DNA of 62,265 nucleotides, counting the filler, from Trichosphaerium sp. ATCC 40318 (lineage: Eukaryota > Protista > Tubulinea), in the NCBI GenBank assembly GCA_038496445.1. It is 3 parts of 3 records of this genome, joined end to end, with 100 filler letters (N's around TTAATTAATTAA, not from the genome) between each part and the next. Parts side by side here need not be neighbours in the genome. Positions count along the whole stretch, not along the records: positions 20,755 to 50,755 come from JALMLS010000245.1; 2 more parts are not named here. One strand, written 5' to 3'. A program made the translations under genes and the position numbers. How positions within the stretch are numbered: the stretch's first letter is position 1; every line of letters begins with the position of its first letter. Shown in pieces: positions 20,755-41,049 of this stretch. The notes under the pieces are model-generated. The model saw only the letters and a program-made list of their open reading frames with translations. It was not told where the DNA came from and searched no databases.

Positions 20755-20870
20755 ACTGTTTATCAATACTGTGTTGCTCATGGCCACCACTGTTGTACAA
20801 TACTGAACAACAAGAAAAAAAAAAGCAATTTATTTGAAATACAACTTGACGGTGAGTACAAGCTGAGTTA

Positions 20871-22412
20871 TCACAAAAAGTCACGTATAGTGTACGATTG
20901 GTATGGTGAATGTTGTTCTAGATGTTCATATGCAGGTTTTTTTCCATTAATTATTAAAGTACCACAAGACCAAACAAAGAAATAAGACATTCTTGCTGAA
21001 ACAGAATCACATCTGCAATGCTTAAGAGGTCCAAATAAATACAAGATACCATAATCAGTGATAAGAGGACAATCATTTGCAGTCAAATTAGTGACTCCAT
21101 AGAGAGATATAATGCTGTCATCCGTAATATTTTGACATCCAGAAATATCAAGTTTTTCTACACCAACAAGATATTTTAATCCTTTATCTGTAATTTCACT
21201 ACAATTAACCAAACTGACATCACGTGCTCCTGAAATATACTTCAAACCTTCATCTGTTATAAAAAAACAGTGATCAAGTTTTATCTCTGAAACACCTCCC
21301 AGTGCTTTCAAAGACAAGTCGGTAATTAATGTGCAATTTTTTAGATTTATCTTGTATACTCCACGTAATGCTGAGACACCTTCATCAGTGATATAGTCAC
21401 AGCCACTTAGTGATATTGTGTGAACACCTGCAAGGTATGATATACCCAATGAAGTCACATTGAAACAGTTATCTAATAGAATTGTATGTACACCTTTAAG
21501 ACACTTAAGACCAATATCTGTTATAAATGTATCACAAATGTCGATTGTGTGAACTCCTGATAGCGCCTTCATACACTTATCACCAATGTTACAACGATTC
21601 AAGTTGATAGTGTGTATACCAGAAAGCGCTGATACACCTTTATCAGTGATATAAGGATTCCTGTGGATAATAAGCTTTTTAACACCTGCAAGTGCTTTCA
21701 ATCCAACATCTGTCAGATTATTTGATCCAAAGTTGTATCCAATAGGAGCAAGCTTTGCTTCTTTGACACCTGCCAAAGATGCGTATCCTTCGTCAGATAC
21801 TTTGTCACAGTTACTGATTCTTATTGTTTTAACACCAGCAAGTGCTCCAACACCTTTGTTAGTGATGTTGTTGCAAAAAGATAAGTCAATGGTTGGCACT
21901 CTAGAAATAGCTTCCAGATTACTGTCAGTAACACACTCCCCAATCAATGATATTTCTTTGAGTCTAGAGAGTGATTTTAGACCTTTTGGAGTGATTATTT
22001 CATTAGGAACAAAGGAAAGCTTGGTAATATTCGTAAGCGCTGACAAACCAACATCCGTGATAGTACTACGACCAATATCTAGTGTGCGGACGTTTCCGAA
22101 GTGTGTTATGACCTCATCGCTGATTTTTCTGATGTCCATCCTCAGATTATACGCTCCGTAAAGAAGAATGGCTATTTCTGGCCTCAATAGCATTGATACA
22201 TGAATATGGGTTGACTTTAAAAGTCCTTTGTTCTTGCAGAGGTCCAGTACGTTGTAATTTTTTGCGTCAATGTTAGCAAAGCCAATATCATTTCGTACTA
22301 CGTGTAGAAACTGTTTACAGGTCAAAGAGATAGATTTCAGATTTGAAGTGCGTAAGAACATCAGGATTTCGCATACCATCTCTCGTGGTAGCGATGACAT
22401 AAAGCAAGTCAT
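20871..22412 (-). CDS. Intronless F-box + cysteine-containing LRR protein (513 aa)
   Basis: FMSSLPREMVCEILMFLRTSNLKSISLTCKQF (F-box) followed by many LxGVxxIxLxxCxxITDxG repeats. Confidence 0.9.
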   Translation of the reverse strand: MTCFMSSLPREMVCEILMFLRTSNLKSISLTCKQFLHVVRNDIGFANIDAKNYNVLDLCKNKGLLKSTHIHVSMLLRPEIAILLYGAYNLRMDIRKISDEVITHFGNVRTLDIGRSTITDVGLSALTNITKLSFVPNEIITPKGLKSLSRLKEISLIGECVTDSNLEAISRVPTIDLSFCNNITNKGVGALAGVKTIRISNCDKVSDEGYASLAGVKEAKLAPIGYNFGSNNLTDVGLKALAGVKKLIIHRNPYITDKGVSALSGIHTINLNRCNIGDKCMKALSGVHTIDICDTFITDIGLKCLKGVHTILLDNCFNVTSLGISYLAGVHTISLSGCDYITDEGVSALRGVYKINLKNCTLITDLSLKALGGVSEIKLDHCFFITDEGLKYISGARDVSLVNCSEITDKGLKYLVGVEKLDISGCQNITDDSIISLYGVTNLTANDCPLITDYGILYLFGPLKHCRCDSVSARMSYFFVWSCGTLIINGKKPAYEHLEQHSPYQSYTIRDFL

Positions 22413-26115: not shown

Positions 26116-28959
<2,844 letters not shown>

Positions 28960-29110
28960 ACAATAATCGACACTAAGTCTTTTTTTATTTATTGCAGATA
29001 TCAATACAAAAGCAGCAATAAAATCAGTTTTATCAGTTCCTTTACAATACTAAATGTCACTATCACGTGATATCGTTTTTGTTTTTCGGAATGTTCGCGT
29101 GCATGCATCC

Positions 29111-29164
29111 GTCTAGATCCCGTAACCCTACAGTTAAGAGCTTCCCGCTCAACCAACTGAGCTA
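29111..29164 (-). pseudogene. Degenerate tRNA-Lys(CTT) fragment
   Basis: Ungapped 43/54 match to the tRNA at 40253-40306; acceptor arms lost. Confidence 0.7.
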
Positions 29165-29280
29165 AGGATAAAAATATGTTTATTAAGCCAAAAAGGCTGG
29201 CTTAAAGTACTTCACTTCGGTAACAAGATTGTTTCTTTAATCTTGACAAACAGTGTCCGTCGACCGTTTGTTCTTACAAC

Positions 29281-30405
29281 ATGGCTCGATACTCTAAAGA
29301 GGTATATGAACCCTTTTGATTCTTTTCGTTGAGCTTTGCTTTGATCAACGCTATACTGCCAAGACTACCATCATACCAATAGCATGCAAAATAGCGCTAA
29401 CAGAGCAAAGCATGAAACGAGTAATTTGATATATTGCATTGTTGTCTGTTAGCGGTGTTGTATGTTCTTCGTAGTCTTTGGCTATGCACTTTTAAAAAAA
29501 CTTCTTATTCTACAAAACTCTCCTGTTGTACAAAAAGCCTTTCTACCAAAGAAAATCACTCAATCTACTTCTTGCACGCTGACCAATTCGCAATCTACGT
29601 GTTTCTAAAACTCGCTTGTTTTGTATTCTCTAGTATCGTGTGTTCTGACCCAGACATTAATTAGATTAGCTCATTAATACCTGCAAATAACGCATTACTA
29701 CTACTCCCAATGGAGATTCAAATAGCAATAATCTACAGAGACTTCGAGGTTTACCTGAAATGGCCTGTCTTATCAAAGTACACGGCACTAACAACAAGGT
29801 TTGACGGCAACATCGAGAAAAACGGCAAATGGTTACAACGGAAGGTATTCTACGAAAACAATACACTCACAGCAATGATTGTATGTCAAGAGTTTTGGAT
29901 GCGCGGTCAACTACACGGTGAGTTTAAGTTATGGCATGACAACGGTGTCTTAAGGAACCTCTGTTATTTTGTCCACAATAAAAATGAAGGAGTCTACCAG
30001 GAGTGGTATGAGAGCGGCGAATTGTATTCTCAGTATAATTACCGAGATGGTAAGAGAGAAGGTGAGTACACTGAGTGGCATGAGAACGGTCAGTTGATGG
30101 AACTGTCGTATTTCCATCTAGACGGTCGATGCGGGCAGAAAAAGAGGTGGTATGAGGACGGACAGTTAATGGAGCTGTCTTATTTTGTAAATGGTGCTCA
30201 AGTGGGTCTGAAGACTCAGTGGCATCGTAATGGTATCTTGTATGAAAAAACCACTTATGAGAATGGTGTAAGAGAAGGAGAGCATAAGCTTTGGCATGTT
30301 AATGGTCAATTATGGGAAAAGGTTTTTTACGTAAATGGTAAGCCAAAGGGAGAATACAAGAGATGGTATTTTGATGGTGAACTGGAGAAGGCCACAATCG
30401 TGTAA
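29281..30405 (+). CDS. F-box-like + MORN2 repeat protein
   Basis: Probable short first exon MARYSKE (29281) spliced in phase to ISSLIPANNALLLLPMEIQIAII; repeats GEYxEWHENGQL..Y.NG. Confidence 0.8.
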
Positions 30406-33475: not shown

Positions 33476-33673
33476 TGAATGCAGTTAAATGTCTCATTAG
33501 TTTTTGTAAAATATTGTGTAGGTGTAAAGCAAATAAAAACCAAGTATGTCCATAGTAGGGAATGATAGCTAGTAAAAAAGAAATGACCAAGGTGTCACTT
33601 TTTGGTCATTAAAGCAGTAGAAGGTGAAATGAGCTTGCTGAATTGTTGAGTGTCAATTCCAAAAATGAGTGTG

Positions 33674-33719
33674 GATACATCAACTGCATAGTTGAGAGCC
33701 GTGCGCTCAACCAACTGAG
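33674..33719 (-). pseudogene. Second degenerate tRNA-Lys fragment
   Basis: Ungapped 36/46 match to the tRNA at 40258-40303; several changes are CpG to TpG/CpA. Confidence 0.65.
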
Positions 33720-33793
33720 ATGAAGCAAATAAATATTTATTTATTAAACAAGTATTTATTAAATTTATTTTGCATACTCAGTTAACTGAGTTG

Positions 33794-33799
33794 AAAAAA
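33794..33799 (-). terminator. Pol III terminator (T6) of the interrupted tRNA-Lys gene
   Basis: TTTTTT on the minus strand immediately after discriminator base G73 (33800). Confidence 0.8.
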
Positions 33800-33812
33800 C
33801 TCCCGACGAGGG
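33800..33812 (-). tRNA. Displaced 3' end (positions 61-73) of tRNA-Lys(CTT)
   Basis: Minus strand reads CCCTCGTCGGGAG; GTCGGGA pairs with the 5' acceptor strand TCCCGGC at 40313-40307. Confidence 0.88.
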
Positions 33813-34716
33813 GAGTGTGATCTTAAACGTTCCATTGAGAGCAACCAGCTCAAACAAGACCAGTCATTTTGGGTGTTTTTCAGCTCAGTTGGGTCGTTTT
33901 AAAGGGGACAATGAGTTGTACAAAAATTGTTTCAAATTGTACATTCCACGCACCGAATTGTAACCAAATTTCTACCAAAATACCGCGATTGACGAAACGG
34001 TGCGCAAAACCAATACGTGCATGGCGAAGACAAACAAAGGTACGTGAATAGCGTTTGTTAAGTGTTACCAATTTGGTTTCAAAGTTAGCCGTTATTGGTT
34101 AATAACCAGTATTAGAGTATAAAACCGCGATACCATGCGTAGAGGAAGCGTTTAGCGACTACAATAATTAATTGTAGTTTTTTTTGTACTAAATCGAACG
34201 CATGTCACTCAAAACAAGCTTGCGCAGGTTAGTGCACGTTACAGACGCGCCACCGGTATGTGATTGGCACTAAATTTAACTAATAACGTTATTAGAGCCA
34301 AAATACAAAAAAAGGAGAAAAATCCTGCCGCTTGACCAAAATTGTAGCGTGCACGGTTTAGACGCGTATGCCGGAGTATGAAGGTTTTTTTTTTCTCAAA
34401 AAAAGCGAGTTTTTGCTTTTGCTCTAATTTGTAAATAGGTGTATATGGCCTACATATACCACGTAAACGCCAGTGGAGTACAAATTGGAAAAGTGGCAAA
34501 AAAAAAAAGAGGCGATTTGCCTCTTTTTGAAAATACAAAAAAAACCCGCGTAGTTTTTTACCTTTTCATCACAGGTGTAAGCCACGTCACTTCTAATACG
34601 AAAAAGTGACTGCATAATCAATAGAAGGAATATTTAGAGGTATGTTTATGTTGTAGAAAAAAAAAAACAAAATAAAAGCAATGTTAAAACTAACGTTCTA
34701 CTTTATTGGACACAAA

Positions 34717-37700
34717 TCACTGATTCTTGCAAGTCGTCTGCCACAACCCTATCATTGTGTGCGCGTGCCCACGCTTCATGCCACAACTTACCATGGCGTC
34801 CACACTTGTAAACTCCATGTACTCATACCCTTGCTCATGTAGAGTCTTTGCAACTTCTTCATCATAAAATGGGAATTTCAAGTAAAACGGGTGTACTGGC
34901 GTCATGCCTGAAAGTGACTCATGATGATTAGGAAACGGATTGATATCAAGCTCATCCGCTTCCATTGGTGTAGCTACTAGTGTTAAACAGGGTAAGGGAG
35001 TACAAAGTGTTACTTACGCATAACAAAGGTTGCTGGATCAATGCGATCAGGATCAATACTATCATCGCTAAGTTCATCAGATGAAATCTCATGTAGCTGT
35101 TCATCCAGCTGTTCAGAGATGCCATCAAATTCTGCAGTGTCAGCTCCCTCGTTAAGAAACTCCACTAGGTACAGTTAGGGTACATAGCAACTATGTAGGT
35201 GCAGAGGATTAATGCTCATACGTGGGTTGACATCTGGAAGCATTGCATCTTCTAATTCCACATTTTCGATTTGCCCTGCTTGCATCCGTTCTATGTCACT
35301 TGCAGACGGCTTAGGACAATATTCACCAGCGTCAAGACCATATACTGTTCGTCTCAATATGCCTTGTCGTAACCAAAGAAGCTTGGAGATGTACAGCTTT
35401 GCATTCTCTCTTTGATTATTCACTGCTATTCTCACACGATCATAATCTTTCTTGTCTTTATCTGTGGCCCCGGCTGCCATTTTTTTAATGAGCGCTCTCT
35501 CACGGAGGATTGGTTTGTATTTACTGTAGGTACAGAGCAGTGTTTCAAGGACCTCTTCAGGTATGTTCCTCTTCTTGAGTCTACAGTATAATTAGATGCT
35601 GAACTAATATAACAGAACAGGAAAAGCAACGTACTTTCTTAGAAAGTATACTCTTGAGCCATTCTTTGCACTGTACTTCTCTTTTGTTCGTATTTTGCGA
35701 TACATGGCCTTAGTTACCTTCAAGCAGAGGACACGGTCCATGTTGACAATGTCTACATCATAGGAGGTGTCGTCAAGCGTTACATGTGGCTTCAAAACGC
35801 GTAGCATCTCATCGTAATCAAACATTGGAGGAAGCTCAACGATATCCTCTGTCTGCATCCTGTTGTCATCCTTCCAGTACTCCATCATCTCTTCAACGTC
35901 GTCTGTGTCTACAGGAATAGGGTTGAGGTCTACGGCAGTGCCTATTTGCCCATTCAAGCACAAGGAACGTAAGAGCAACAAACGACCGACAATAATCTTG
36001 GCTTCCCTCTGTCCTTGAGCTGCTTTACGTTTAGCACAGATGATGTCACCTTTGGGAGCATTGCGGCTAATGAGGAGCTCTACTCCTTCAACAGACTGGT
36101 TGTACTTTGAGCAATATTGTCTTAAAAGCTTCTCTTTGTCATCTTGGATTAATACCTTGGCGTTGAAGCTGCAGATAACATTAATACAGGCAAGTACGTG
36201 CTTAGTGTGACTTACTATCTTTCAAAGTATAATTTCTTGTTCTTCATAATCCCGAGTTCCGTCTTCAACCCTTTAGGAATCCTCAACTCAAGAAACCTAT
36301 CCAATGAATATGTTCCATCAAATGAGCGTGTCTTGGATATTATCTCAACAGATATAACTCTTCCAATAGCTGCCATAAGCAACCTTTTGTGGACTCGCAT
36401 CTTTTCCTTTAAACTTGCAACTCCTTTTTTCTTTTTTGGATTGTTCCTGTGTTTTGTTATCTGCCGTTGCATTTTGAGAAGTGTAGAGTTGTTGTTGAGC
36501 GTTGTTTTTTCGTCATCAGTTGAGTACAAGTGGTATCTAGAGTGAGCGTCAATGGTTGTTTAAAAATGAACTCAAAAACTCACTGTTGGATGTAGAATCT
36601 TTTTACGACAACATCTCCATGGCTTTTGGTCTTGTAGTGAAGTGAACCATCTATAGAGGTGTAAGTAAAGACATAAAGGAATACAGGTAACGTACGGTTA
36701 GCCAACAGTTTGTTGTATGACGGAGACATGCTGAGGATCTGCGATCGCATCACGGGACTGAGAGTAGCAGTTGTCATTTTAGTAGCACCATCTTTAGGTA
36801 CATGTGGCATGTACCACGACCAAGCCATCTCTCTCGCTGTATAACGGCGTGGTTGCTTCTCTGCAAATAATGAGGTTGTATTCATGATTACCTCATGAAA
36901 GTGAGCATAGTAGACGTCCATCACCTGGTGAATTAAAGTCAGATAAACCAAAAAAAAAAAATACAAAATATTTTGGTTGTTTTTTTCTTTAAGTGTACCT
37001 TCCCGTCCTTTGACCACCCTGCTTGACGTGCTAGCATGTCTCTGTCAATAGGACGATTTTCATCTGCACAACGGATAATATGGTTCAAGATTAAACCACG
37101 TCTTGCTCCTTTGGAAGTTATTTGTCCCTTTTTGAAGCCGGCCTTAATTCCAGCAACTGTTACATCACGTTTTAGAGTCTGTGTTGTAATTGGAACCTTG
37201 GGCTCCCATTCATTTCTGTGACTGTTGATTTTGCAAAAGAATGGCTCTTCTAGCATTGCTTCTTTGATCTTGTAAGGTCTTCCTACTTCCCGGCTCTTTT
37301 CAATGGCATTGCAACTGGCAAGGTACTGCATTATAGCAATGACAGGGCAAAAAGATTTGTCAACGTGATTGCGATTGAAGGTCTTGTATTGGTTACACTG
37401 TGATGGAACCTTATCCCATGTAAAAAACACTTCAATAGCCATCTGAACAAAAACAAAGTTAATACAAGAAACAAAAGAGTTGTATTGTAAACGGTACGTA
37501 CATCATCATCACTACAACCAGCTATAAAGTTTATGTGTCTCAACAAAAGCACTGGGGCATCTTTCTTTGTTTGTGGACAATAAGAACCCACCCTCTTGCC
37601 GACAATGGCCTGCATAATCATGTAGCAGCGGAACCTCAAGTGTTTGAGGGATTGGACATCATAAGAGTTTGCTAGGATGTGCTTGTTCATGTCAGTTGTT

Positions 37701-39276
37701 ATGGGAAGTTTGTTTATCTTCTCCACATATCTCGGAAACATTTTATTCCACTCTTTTGTGTACCAAGTCTCTAGCTTATTCACTAACATAGAAATAAGCA
37801 ACAAAACACAAACGAAAAATGTAAAGCAAAAGCAAAGAGCTTACACCCAGTCGAGAAAGCCTTGTTCATGAGAGGAGATTCTCCAGAGTCTGAATTATCT
37901 CTTTGCCATCTACAAAGTGCTTTGGCATAGTACTGAACGGTTTTTGGTGTCAGAGGGCGTTTATCATATGTTCTGCTGCAATCTTTCAGGATAATTTTAA
38001 ACCACATGTTCAAGTTTGGTATAGTGAGAGGCATAGCTTGCTGTAACTCTTCATTTGGAGCTTCGGCTACCAGTTTTTCATTGTAAGCCTTGATGAACGC
38101 TTTCCAACGCTTGTAGACAAAGATTGTGCCCTTACAGGTGCTGGGAGCATAGACGACATCATTGGGAATCTCTGACATCATAGCACTAACAACACAGTTA
38201 ACTTAGAGCAAAGGAAAATGGTGGTAACAAACTTACAGTTCTTCGACAGTGTGTTGGCTGAGTAAATCTTCATATGAAATGTTTTGGGATTGCGCATTGG
38301 TTGTGTCTGCTTGTTGTGGTACTTTGGATACAGGAAACATCTTTTTGCGGTACTGGATGAGAGTTAGTACTTGACAATCAAAAAAAAAGGCCAGTACATA
38401 CCTCTTGAATCGCTGTTATCTGTTCTAGTACCAAAAATCCAATGTCGCCAGCGTCTGGATGTTCTGAGGCAAGGTTTTCATAACCTCTATGCAGACACAA
38501 CCATAACGAAAGCTTTCGCATGGTATCTTCTTGTGTAACAGGACTTCGTTCATAGGCATGGCGTACAATCTCTAAGTTGGGAAAGGATATGATCTTGCTC
38601 CAATCCAAAGTCTTTGGGAAAAAACAATCATCCTTAGGGCCAACCAAGAATGTATCAATTGAAACTGGGTTGTCGACAATCTACATAAGTTAAAACAAAT
38701 CAGTAAAGTGCTACAAAGTGGGATAAAAGCATACCAAGGGCGTCACCTGACTTGCAATAGGAATAGTTGGCGACTGCACCTGCTCTGATATAAAGGCAGC
38801 TCTTGCTTTGAGTGACAGAGAGAGAGGACCAGCTATTTCAGGGCTTTGTGACCTTATACGTTTTGATCTCCTTGGATTTGATTTGCTAACATGTTCTTTC
38901 CTATGAGATCTACCACGCTTTCGCTTCATCCTGCTAGGAATTAGAGTAAGTCAACAATTCCAAGATACTTTTACAAAGGCCTTGTACCACAAGTATGACA
39001 ACTGATCAATGTGAGGACTGCATGCACGCTGGAGAGCCTTTTTGGTAGAATGAGAAAACACACGACAAATAATTAACAATCACATTTTTATTGCAGATTA
39101 CTTTTACATTGAAGAGTGCCAACAATTATGCCTAAAACCATTAGGACACAAATGAAAAGATAAAAGGTTAAGGGTTTGTGTTTTGGGGTTGGGTGACAAT
39201 CACGCTTACAAAAAATATGTACTCTTGTAGTTTCTTCTTTGACTTTATTAATAGCTTCGGAATCAATCAACTTCAT
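34717..39276 (-). CDS. Large multi-exon tyrosine recombinase (5' exons uncertain)
   Basis: Core-binding-like APSTCKG..YKRWKAF..PKTVQYYAKAL; catalytic motifs LRFRCYMIMQAIVGKRVGS (R), FTWDK (K), FCPV, EPFF, ITSKGARRG (x-x-x-R), RQAGW (W), VMDVYY (Y); long C-terminal extension. Confidence 0.85.
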
Positions 39277-39939
39277 CGCAAAAGCCCTACAACAACACTA
39301 TCTCAATATCTTAAAAGTCACAATCATGTGATTATAATTTATCAAACGTGATTTTGTACTTCCGTGGTTTCTGGCAACAAAACTGATGAGATTGTAGTGT
39401 ACGTACGTTTAGGTAACTTGCTGTATTGCACAAATAATTGTAACAACATAGCGTATAGTAAAAAGGTGTTAATTGTGGTTGCGGATGTATAAAACAACGC
39501 TAAAAGGTACGCAGAACAAAAATACCACGATTTGTAGTAACAACGTACCTTTTGTCGCATGTGACAGGAGAAATGCCGTTACGCACCTGAAATGACGCGG
39601 CTGTTGTTTGTACTTAAAACTGTTACATTCCGGCATAATGTAACAGTTTTCGCACGTATGTTACTTTACCAACAGCATACCACTGTTCCGTTACTTATTT
39701 ACTACCTGTAGAAAAAATGGTAAGAAATTGTAAACACGTAAGTTTGTGCACCTTTCCTTTCTCACGTGGGTGTGCTTGCAATAATGGTAGCTTGATTGCT
39801 ACCATATATGCTTACATTGTATTTGTACATTACAATGTAAGCGCACAACTCAGCATAATTGAGCTACAAAGTGCTAAAACCTGTAATTTTCCCATTTTGG
39901 GCCAATAAACGAGGAGCGGCCAGCTCAAATTTCCTTGCC

Positions 39940-40211
39940 AACTCAGTTATTTTTTACAACTCAGTTGTGCGCACAACTCAGTTGAAATTTTGTAACTCAG
40001 TTGGCACTAACTGAGCTACATGCGCAACTGAGCTTAAAATTTTAACTGAGTTAGTGACGTTAACTCAGCTGAAAATGTAAAACTCAGTTGATGTCGTAGC
40101 TCAGTTAACAACGTTTTCAGCTGAGTTTTGGACATCAACTCAGTTAAAACTTTAGCTCAGCTGTTGCCAACTGAGCTGAAAACCAACTGAGTTTTCCCCG
40201 ACAACTGAGTT
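39940..40211. repeat. Array of 16 quasi-palindromic ARCTSAGYT motifs at about 17.5-bp spacing
   Basis: Copies start at 39940, 39958, 39975, 39994, 40009, 40026, 40044, 40062, 40081, 40098, 40119, 40137, 40154, 40169, 40185 and 40203. Confidence 0.92.
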
Positions 40212-40246
40212 CAAAGTACTTTTGCTAACCAATATACCACTCACAA

Positions 40247-40313
40247 ACGAGGGTCTCGATCCCTCGACCGTACGGTTAAGAGCCGTACGCTCTACCAACT
40301 GAGCTAGCCGGGA
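40247..40313 (-). tRNA. tRNA-Lys: tRNA-Lys(CTT), positions 1-67, interrupted
   Basis: TCCCGGC TA GCTC AGTTGGTA GAGC G TACGG CTCTTAA CCGTA CGGTC GAGGG ATCGAGA CCCTC GT; D, anticodon and T arms pair perfectly, but the following TTGTG cannot complete the acceptor stem. Confidence 0.93.
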
Positions 40314-41049
40314 CTTGTCGATGGGTTTGAGTAACGTTTATTGGGGTTCTATAAAATCTAAACCTGTCAATAATTAGTATTAGAGTAGTAAACACAAACA
40401 CCATAAACTTCCAGTAGTTTTCCAAAACGTACACTTTATACACATAGTGCTACACCGAAAGTTGCTAAATGTTGGCACCAGAAAAAAACACGCCGTGAAG
40501 ATCTTTAAGAAATGTTGAGTATGCTTTTGTCGCACAAATGAACAATAACGGGATATCTTACATTTACCATGGCCAAAACAAACCGCTAACACTGTAATTT
40601 TATGAAATAATGTGGCACGGTTACAGCGTATTAGCGTAACTGTGATACAACAGATTCCCTGCCATCAAAAATTACACATATACATAGTGTAGTCGCGGTC
40701 ACGTCTTGGCTTAGCCAGCTACAACAATTCTTCCGTTAATTGTCGTCTAAATAGAGATGTTAACAAAACAACGGTTGAGACCAAAATGAAGCTGCTTAAA
40801 AATGAGATAAATGAAGCAGTTTCGTTTCTTGTTTTTTTCGCATTTGTTGTTGTAGCTTAGTTATGTTTGACTTACTTTTAGCTAGCCGGTACACTCATGA
40901 TACAAACACGTGAGTATCTCTTACCACGTAAAGTAACATATAAGGATACTGTAATGTGTTATGTTGCAAGTTCTAACAGTACACTTCTATGCATACCTAC
41001 AGACTGCCAAAAATGTAGGAAAAAAAGAGGATTAGAACTCTACTTTCGT

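Follow-up and report, generated by a model that had tools for sequence, protein, structure and literature searches.

How does a mobile element find a tRNA gene in a eukaryotic genome? Site-specific DNA transposons are rare in eukaryotes, and how they find their targets is little understood. The question is raised here by a stretch of DNA from the protist Trichosphaerium sp. ATCC 40318 (Tubulinea; assembly GCA_038496445.1). The whole stretch, 62,265 nucleotides in three joined parts with filler included, is called the window below. In it, a mobile element is inserted in a tRNA-Lys(CTT) gene and carries, close to one of its ends, sixteen copies of a short palindromic word that also occurs in the D arm of the target. 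This array may explain how the element finds tRNA genes. All results rest on a single copy of the element, contained in one 30-kb piece (positions 20,755 to 50,755 of the window, from JALMLS010000245.1). The features are collected in Table 1.

A tRNA-Lys(CTT) gene split by a 6.4-kb element

The tRNA gene is found in two separate parts. Rfam gives one tRNA match on the minus strand (40249-40306, 43.1 bits, model positions 8-63 of 71), and the anticodon loop of the matched tRNA carries CTT, for lysine. A complete tRNA was not found by ARAGORN at the split gene because the 3′ acceptor strand is absent from this 5′ part. The missing strand is located at the far side of the insertion, where the 3′ strand of the T stem is followed by GTCGGGA. 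All seven nucleotides of this segment pair with those of the 5′ acceptor strand TCCCGGC (40309-40315), one of the pairs being G-T. Past the T arm at the right junction, on the other hand, the sequence is that of the element and does not pair with TCCCGGC. The match of the two tRNA halves was assessed by inspection. Furthermore, ACGAGGG is the sole word common to both junctions. Because the displaced 3′ half pairs with the 5′ half and because ACGAGGG is shared by the junctions, the 6441 bp in between are identified as an insertion. It splits the tRNA-Lys(CTT) gene at the junction between the T stem and the acceptor stem (about positions 61-67) and leaves the gene broken. The GC content of the element is marginally higher than that of its flanks.

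The 7-bp word had been called a crossover core in an earlier note on this DNA. The direct repeat is indeed present at position 40247, and a single copy of the element is compatible both with a recombination core and with a target-site duplication. At the extreme ends of the element, no inverted repeat of at least 14 nt was reported in the repeat analysis. A possible tRNA-like character of the element segment that borders the left junction was considered and rejected (local alignment, p = 0.74).

The truncated tRNA (40179-40315, minus strand) retains the D-arm and T-arm regions of the internal promoter. From there, the first run of four T on the minus strand is met at 40179-40182, inside the array. 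Judging from these positions, transcription by RNA polymerase III (Pol III) could conceivably start in the tRNA and continue into the element, giving a chimeric RNA of about 135 nt.

Table 1. Position of the element, of its target and of neighbouring features in the window.
Feature	Coordinates	Strand	Remarks
Inserted mobile element	33813..40253	-	6441 bp with a single 7-bp repeat counted in; carries one multi-exon gene (minus strand)
Left 7-bp direct repeat, ACGAGGG	33806..33812		CCCTCGT on the tRNA strand, about tRNA positions 61-67
Right 7-bp direct repeat, ACGAGGG	40247..40253		Second junction
tRNA-Lys(CTT), 5′ part	40247..40315	-	5′ acceptor strand, D arm, anticodon arm, T arm
Displaced tRNA 3′ end	33794..33812	-	3′ strand of T stem, GTCGGGA (3′ acceptor strand), one G, six T
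Array of 16 units A[A/G]CT-[C/G]-AG[C/T]T	39940..40211		Spacers of 6-12 bp
Stretch between last array unit and 7-bp repeat	40212..40246		35 bp
Right arm of 19-bp sub-terminal inverted repeat	40167..40185		Array unit 14 and 11-mer AGCTCAGTTGG; 61 bp from 7-bp repeat
Left arm of 19-bp sub-terminal inverted repeat	33874..33892		Unit 33882-33890, 11-mer 33882-33892; 61 bp from 7-bp repeat
11-mer AGCTCAGTTGG of the tRNA itself	40295..40305	-	A-box region; 5′ strand of the D stem and part of the D loop, beginning at tRNA position 9
Two abutting units in the host flank	33775..33792		16-bp palindrome, 13 bp beyond the 7-bp repeat, directly after the T-run of the tRNA
Single protein-coding gene	34717..38929	-	About 14 exon-like segments and about 13 short GT...AG stretches; orphan product
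F-box/LRR protein	20871-22412	-	Host neighbour; 513 amino acids, intron-less
MORN-repeat protein	29710-30405	+	Host neighbour; 231 amino acids
FAD-linked oxidase gene fragment	27611-28045	+	Host neighbour; must be intron-split

The sixteen-unit array and its counterpart at the other end

The word ARCTSAGYT has 22 exact matches in the window, against 1.88 +/- 1.37 in shuffled sequences (maximum 6). Sixteen of these matches are packed into the 272 bp of the array. Within the array, the starts of successive units are separated by 18, 17, 19, 15, 17, 18, 18, 19, 17, 21, 18, 17, 15, 16, and 18 bp, with a mean of 17.5 bp. The earlier note had described sixteen copies, 15-21 bp apart, the last one ending 35 bp ahead of the crossover core, and this is borne out (unit end at 40211, repeat start at 40247). 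The additional copies that it had placed in the tRNA D arm (40297-40305), near the other end of the element (33882-33890, that is, 69 bp inside this end) and in the outer flank (33784-33792) are found as well. Two of its terms have to be amended. The copies had been said to occur in both orientations, which has no structural meaning because the word is a palindrome, in which two half-sites A[A/G]CT flank a central C:G pair. What varies is only the central base, which on the plus strand is C in nine units and G in seven. The term "phased" is right in so far as the spacing is regular, but by simple arithmetic this spacing does not correspond to whole turns of the helix, and the units do not lie on a common face of it. 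The series was not reported by Tandem Repeats Finder because the spacers vary both in length and in sequence.

When the sixteen units are aligned by their central base, information is confined to unit positions 0-9 and every spacer column is at background level. Six unit positions are invariant and two show mirrored transitions; C or G stands at the centre and a purine at position 9. Part of this conservation is by construction, unit positions 0-8 being the search pattern itself. The pattern fits all of the 16 consecutive, regularly spaced sites, and the series contains no degenerate unit. AACT-S-AGTT accounts for nine of the sixteen units, whereas six have one AGCT half-site, as in the tRNA, and a single unit has two. 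Such a 10-bp palindromic core with unconserved spacers fits a series of protein-binding sites. As far as can be judged from the sequence, a sharp core separated by variable spacers of 6-12 bp is the pattern of selected sites and not that of recent tandem duplication. In addition, symmetric half-sites around a constant C/G centre are as expected if the protein were to bind as a dimer.

The array has a counterpart close to the left end of the element. The two arms of the sub-terminal repeat match each other in inverted orientation at 18 of 19 positions (95% complementary), and each arm is located exactly 61 bp from its own copy of the 7-bp repeat. If the ends of the element were joined, the 7-bp site would be at the centre of a 167-bp dyad. 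Both arms contain AGCTCAGTTGG, the 11-mer that the tRNA carries in its A-box region. With 0.01 expected, four copies of this 11-mer are present in the window: one in the target tRNA, one in each arm and one near 29.1 kb, in a pseudogene resembling a tRNA. The structural premises on which the idea of tRNA targeting had been based, namely an insertion in tRNA-Lys, an array at one end and AGCTCAGTTGG in both arms at mirror-image distances, are thus all present at this locus.

Folding of the minus-strand RNA over 39930-40246 yields -130.4 kcal/mol (z = -11.6). In controls that preserve the units, about -110 of -126 kcal/mol arises from any arrangement of these units, and permuted or flipped arrays equal the observed fold energy in 6 of 150 trials. 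Since the controls that keep the units already give about -110 kcal/mol, the fold of the array is largely a by-product of its self-complementary word. The array as a specific giant palindrome was rejected, being mostly accounted for by the self-complementarity of its units.

Besides the array word, a 16-nt word is common to 33839-33854, located 26 bp inside the left end, and to 39914-39929, located just interior to the array. The two copies agree at 14 of 16 positions in direct orientation, and each of them holds a variant of the unit with 2-3 mismatches.

The element protein and the explanations of the shared word

Open reading frame (ORF) segments run from 38929 to 34717 in changing frames and are separated by GT...AG stretches of about 45-75 nt. 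These stretches are read as about 13 introns of one gene, with a predicted coding capacity of about 1100-1200 codons. No stop or frame change was recognised in the gene beyond the presumed introns. Protein searches were made exon by exon. They gave no significant match in Pfam, PHROGs, NCBIfam, the sequences of the PDB or 1.84 billion representative proteins. The sole phmmer match among these representatives, a bacterial immunoglobulin-repeat protein, was discarded as spurious and repeat-driven. The best weak match is with DUF3435, a family of Crypton and Starship recombinases, with an E value of 0.24, below significance. Two single-sequence AlphaFold models had predicted local distance difference test (pLDDT) scores of 37 and 51, too low to be used, and a fold search with one of them was uninformative.

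More can be gained by reading the central exons. They contain, in order, an arginine in G-K-R-V-G-S, a lysine in T-W-D-K, and the segment D-K-S-F-C-P-V-I-A-I-M-Q-Y-L, followed by A-G-I, S-K-G-A-R-R-G, G-W-S and, 10-11 residues further on, tyrosines. Published alignments of Cryptons, in the passages compared, go through the same succession, with P-L-C-P-I-Q...Y-I and "aGi/vGl" for instance, next T-H-a-G-R or N-H-S-L-R, then either G-H or G-R-W, and finally Y (PMC3212892). The common features, a strand-lysine region, D..(F/L)CP...A...Y(L/I), "aGi", an x-x-R-R-G box, G-(H/W) and the tyrosine, come in the same order in both, a likeness established by reading and not statistically. From the order and spacing of these motifs, the enzyme is probably a tyrosine recombinase. 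In the R-H-R-Y tetrad, a lysine would stand at the position of the histidine. Cryptons are DNA transposons with a tyrosine recombinase, and the short direct repeats of 4-6 bp at their ends have been read as a recombination substrate (PMC3212892). Like them, the element measures a few kb, has only one gene, which contains introns, and lacks both terminal inverted repeats and long terminal repeats. It differs from them by the lack of a significant sequence match (DUF3435, E = 0.24), by the lysine in place of the histidine, by a repeat of 7 bp, one base over the 4-6 bp range, and by a sub-terminal pair of repeats 61 bp inside the ends. Within the Cryptons, CryptonV is target-specific for microsatellites (cited in PMC8869645). 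Neither tRNA specificity nor a sub-terminal repeat array is described for Cryptons in the Crypton literature searched.

Relatives were looked for in several ways. No homologous protein was found for the exon ORFs 36942-37442 and 35607-36221, exact look-ups gave no record, no related locus was found in viral contigs, and the 30-kb piece contains no second copy. In viral contigs, a pattern of three array units retrieved perfect tandem repeats and palindromes resembling phage operators, none of them accompanied by a tRNA. In metagenome contigs it retrieved microsatellites and perfect minisatellites, with neither a mixed irregular array nor a tRNA among the matches listed. The 22-mer of the tRNA T arm had no match in metagenomes. 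Its three matches in prokaryotic genomes were judged to be due to chance, two lying in GC-rich gene-like sequence without a tRNA and the third also lacking a tRNA. In two phage contigs of IMG/VR (L004:5446-5508 and L014:2517-2579), the palindrome GAACTCAGTTC has four irregularly spaced copies in an intergenic region. These look like operator sites unrelated to the element.

Considering these data, the copies of the word are tentatively read, with a confidence slightly short of even, as binding sites for a dimeric protein encoded by the element, the copy in the tRNA D arm serving for target capture. The word would be a protein-binding site for the assembly of the ends because its conservation is symmetric and sharply bounded and because the inverted repeat is mirrored. 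The same protein could hold the target because the exact tRNA form AGCTCAGTTGG is found in both arms and in the D arm. A further pair of units in the host flank, 13 bp from the 7-bp site, also speaks for this reading. It may be envisaged that a symmetric, dimeric DNA-binding module of the element would occupy the sixteen units as part of an apparatus that assembles the ends for recombination. The core of this apparatus would be the 19-bp inverted repeat, 61 bp on either side of the 7-bp site of exchange or duplication, and the remaining units would lengthen one of the arms to a platform some 270 bp long. The protein coating the arm would also hold the tRNA gene through the D-arm word, 41 bp from the site of exchange, and this capture would put the 7-bp site, at the junction of T stem and acceptor stem, in register. 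A general affinity for tRNA genes would come from the D-arm word, which is widely conserved, and the exact position from the 7-bp site and its surroundings. If the enzyme is a tyrosine recombinase, it would presumably act via a circular form of the element.

Several observations weigh against such a docking of one protein on array and target. The tRNA copy of AGCTCAGTTGG is 41 bp from the 7-bp site and not 61, so that the geometry of the arms is not mirrored in the target, and the commonest unit, AACT-S-AGTT, is one position off the tRNA word AGCT-C-AGTT. Sixteen sites are, to our knowledge, far above the number met in arm-type systems. No DNA-binding domain was recognised in the element protein by searches of Pfam, PHROGs, NCBIfam and PDB sequences. 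The pair of units in the host flank is accounted for neither by the binding-site model nor by the bounds of the element; it could be a preferred feature of the target or the footprint of an earlier insertion. Finally, a single copy and no relative were found, so that the array as a family trait co-varying with the target would be conjectural.

The proposed arrangement resembles that of prokaryotic tRNA-integrating elements and phages, which use tyrosine integrases with arm-type sites, lambda Int being the paradigm. In both cases, the exchange would occur in a short segment of identity in the 3′ part of a tRNA, and repeated arm sites flank the core. However, the host is here a eukaryote and the gene has introns of the spliceosomal type. 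Moreover, the element does not carry a tRNA 3′ end that would restore the gene, the true 3′ end being left at the far junction. The arm sites also repeat a word of the target, and their number is several times larger. Clusters of short transposase-binding words are also known in sub-terminal position in CACTA (En/Spm) and Ac elements, which have terminal inverted repeats and DDE transposases. As in the array, these words are numerous, occur in both orientations with irregular spacing, and lie within a few hundred bp of the ends, but CACTA and Ac elements have no defined RNA-gene target and their words are unrelated to the target.

The explanation that survives best beside the favoured one is that the element is a divergent member of the Dada superfamily, or a Dada-like element. 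In this case, the 7-bp repeat would be a target-site duplication made by a DDE transposase, and the units would still be end-binding sites. Dada elements measure 4.7-11 kb, with a multi-exon gene, a duplication of 6-7 bp and no terminal inverted repeat (Kojima and Jurka, 2013; PMC3706591). They are inserted at a fixed position inside multicopy genes of small RNAs (tRNA, small nuclear RNA), including tRNA-Lys (PMC3706591, PMC8869645). Their short sub-terminal inverted repeats recur in the target gene, for which a role in target recognition was suggested by the authors (PMC3706591). The architecture seen here agrees with this description point by point, in its size, multi-exon gene, duplication length, tRNA site and absence of a terminal inverted repeat, and the sub-terminal repeats recurring in the target may be a further likeness. 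The 7-bp repeat lies inside tRNA-Lys(CTT), constancy of the site being unproven with one copy only, and the equidistant 19-bp repeat has its 11-mer in the target, at 41 bp there and at 61 bp in the arms. In contrast, the site at the T-stem/acceptor junction is unlike the known tRNA sites of Dada, which cluster at the A box and the anticodon (Kojima, 2022; PMC8869645), and the shared word is present in 16 + 1 copies where Dada has one pair. The protein departs further. All Dada transposases have a CCCC zinc finger at the N terminus and one of the CCHC type at the C terminus, and a DDE triad with C/DxxH after the second D (PMC3706591). The coding-strand ORF segments of the element contain no CxxC or Cx4C pair, so that both fingers are lacking. 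[C/D]xxH is absent from those segments assigned to exons, its one match being in an out-of-frame read-through. Six short patterns, drawn from conserved blocks of Dada as given by the fish sequences in the first part of the alignment, were all without a match in the gene. The order of motifs read in the protein is, on the contrary, collinear with that of Crypton recombinases. Membership in Dada was rejected on these protein hallmarks, even though the logic linking ends and target is Dada-like, and the Dada explanation is considered unlikely.

Blocks of the array are related to each other by direct and inverted duplication, spacers included, and the complementarity of the spacers adds slightly to the folding energy beyond that of the units (z = -3.2 versus letter-shuffled spacers). 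Both features would be consistent with the array being a by-product of descent: slippage, together with direct or inverted duplication, would have multiplied a fragment of a tRNA D arm captured at the end of the element, and the array would resemble the target because of this origin, without any role in recombination or targeting. This appears quite unlikely, since the 9-bp pattern is kept in all of the consecutive units when the spacers are near random and of variable length, and since the flanks of the units do not carry on the tRNA sequence. Moreover, drift would hardly produce a 19-bp repeat mirrored at a distance of 61 bp from either end, and the element stretch at the other junction is not tRNA-like (p = 0.74).

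It may also be imagined that the units are bound by a factor of the host. The earlier note had raised the possibility of a decoy for TFIIIC, resembling an A box and tethering the element to Pol III genes, and a host transcription factor could alternatively use the array for regulating the element gene. The word does overlap the A-box region of the tRNA, and the array is upstream of the element gene on the coding strand, the gene being about 1 kb downstream. Presumably, the unit also contains a match to a Myb recognition element. The high-affinity determinant of TFIIIC is the B box. Besides its occurrence in the tRNA itself (40252-40262, across the right 7-bp repeat), the B-box word of the tRNA has no match in the element, even with two mismatches. 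Because of this lack of a B-box copy, and because most units depart from the tRNA at G10 (A in 11 of 16) and at the GG that follows (lacking in 13 of 16), the TFIIIC decoy is disfavoured. As for a purely regulatory array, it would leave the equidistant inverted repeat at the other end unexplained. Binding by a host factor is thus improbable as a whole.

Lastly, the array might act in cis through structure or maintenance, as a hairpin or cruciform, as a structured RNA or small-RNA precursor (e.g., by Pol III read-through, the truncated tRNA having both internal promoter boxes and the first TTTT only at 40179-40182), or as an iteron-like origin or partition set of a circle, iteron arrays of this size being usual at origins and partition sites; this is the least probable explanation, since the strong minus-strand fold is, as seen above, mostly obtained from any arrangement of the units and reached by permuted or flipped arrays, and no replication or partition gene is recognisable in the element.

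The favoured docking of an element protein on array and tRNA does not invoke a new principle, because the sub-terminal repeats of Dada are already shared with the RNA-gene target; a target word repeated near the ends of an element has been published for that superfamily. Likewise, Cryptons are characterised by short direct repeats and by one recombinase gene with introns, and bacterial integrases by an exchange in the 3′ portion of a tRNA, with repeated arm sites. The combination of a eukaryotic host, an orphan protein resembling a recombinase, insertion at the T-stem/acceptor junction, a 16-unit array and a mirrored 19-bp repeat with an 11-mer of the target is not described in the literature searched. 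The importance of the shared sub-terminal word of Dada has only been guessed, and the present locus offers an extreme and much clearer form of it, in an element that is not a Dada and looks like one with a tyrosine recombinase. If a family were found in the source genome, co-variation between the array word and the D arm of the target could be tested by sequence comparison alone. In addition, tRNA genes would join the known targets of Crypton-like elements. A more far-reaching view, held to be rather doubtful, is that the element would belong to an undescribed eukaryotic superfamily of the integrase type, having a very divergent tyrosine recombinase that homes to tRNA genes by "self-likeness". 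One dimeric module would then read the 9-11-bp word both on the arm array and in the A-box region of the tRNA, thereby bridging donor and target ahead of the exchange at the T-stem/acceptor junction. Such a family would be a eukaryotic counterpart of the bacterial tRNA-integrating elements, with a new targeting logic.

tRNA-like copies, repeats and genes in the vicinity

Two other tRNA-Lys-like sequences occur on the minus strand of the same piece. The first one, at 33660-33725, is a degenerate copy located about 70 nt downstream of the T-run of the target tRNA. It is 73% identical to 40244-40303 without gaps (41 of 59 columns match in the alignment). Its stems are unpaired, the D-arm word deviates by one mismatch, and a T-run stands at its end. 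This copy could be a tandem pseudogene or the relic of an earlier event. The second one, at about 29105-29175, is the pseudogene with an exact AGCTCAGTTGG mentioned above. It has the loop CTCTTAA and broken stems, its likeness to the real tRNA stops just before the position of the 7-bp site, and it was not reported by Rfam. The two copies have in common an AT-rich upstream stretch and a variant of the D loop.

Another word, the 17-bp AATAA-N3-[G/T]TATTAGAG, has two matches versus 0.07 expected. One is in the left part of the element (34101-34117) and the other is outside it (40369-40385), about 55 bp upstream of the tRNA gene. Both sit in a 39-nt stretch that is 74% alike, and a shorter variant is found near 34274-34289.

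Among the neighbouring host genes listed in Table 1, the F-box/LRR gene has its closest proteins at 30-46% identity. These include proteins from protist transcriptomes, one of which is from Trichosphaerium.

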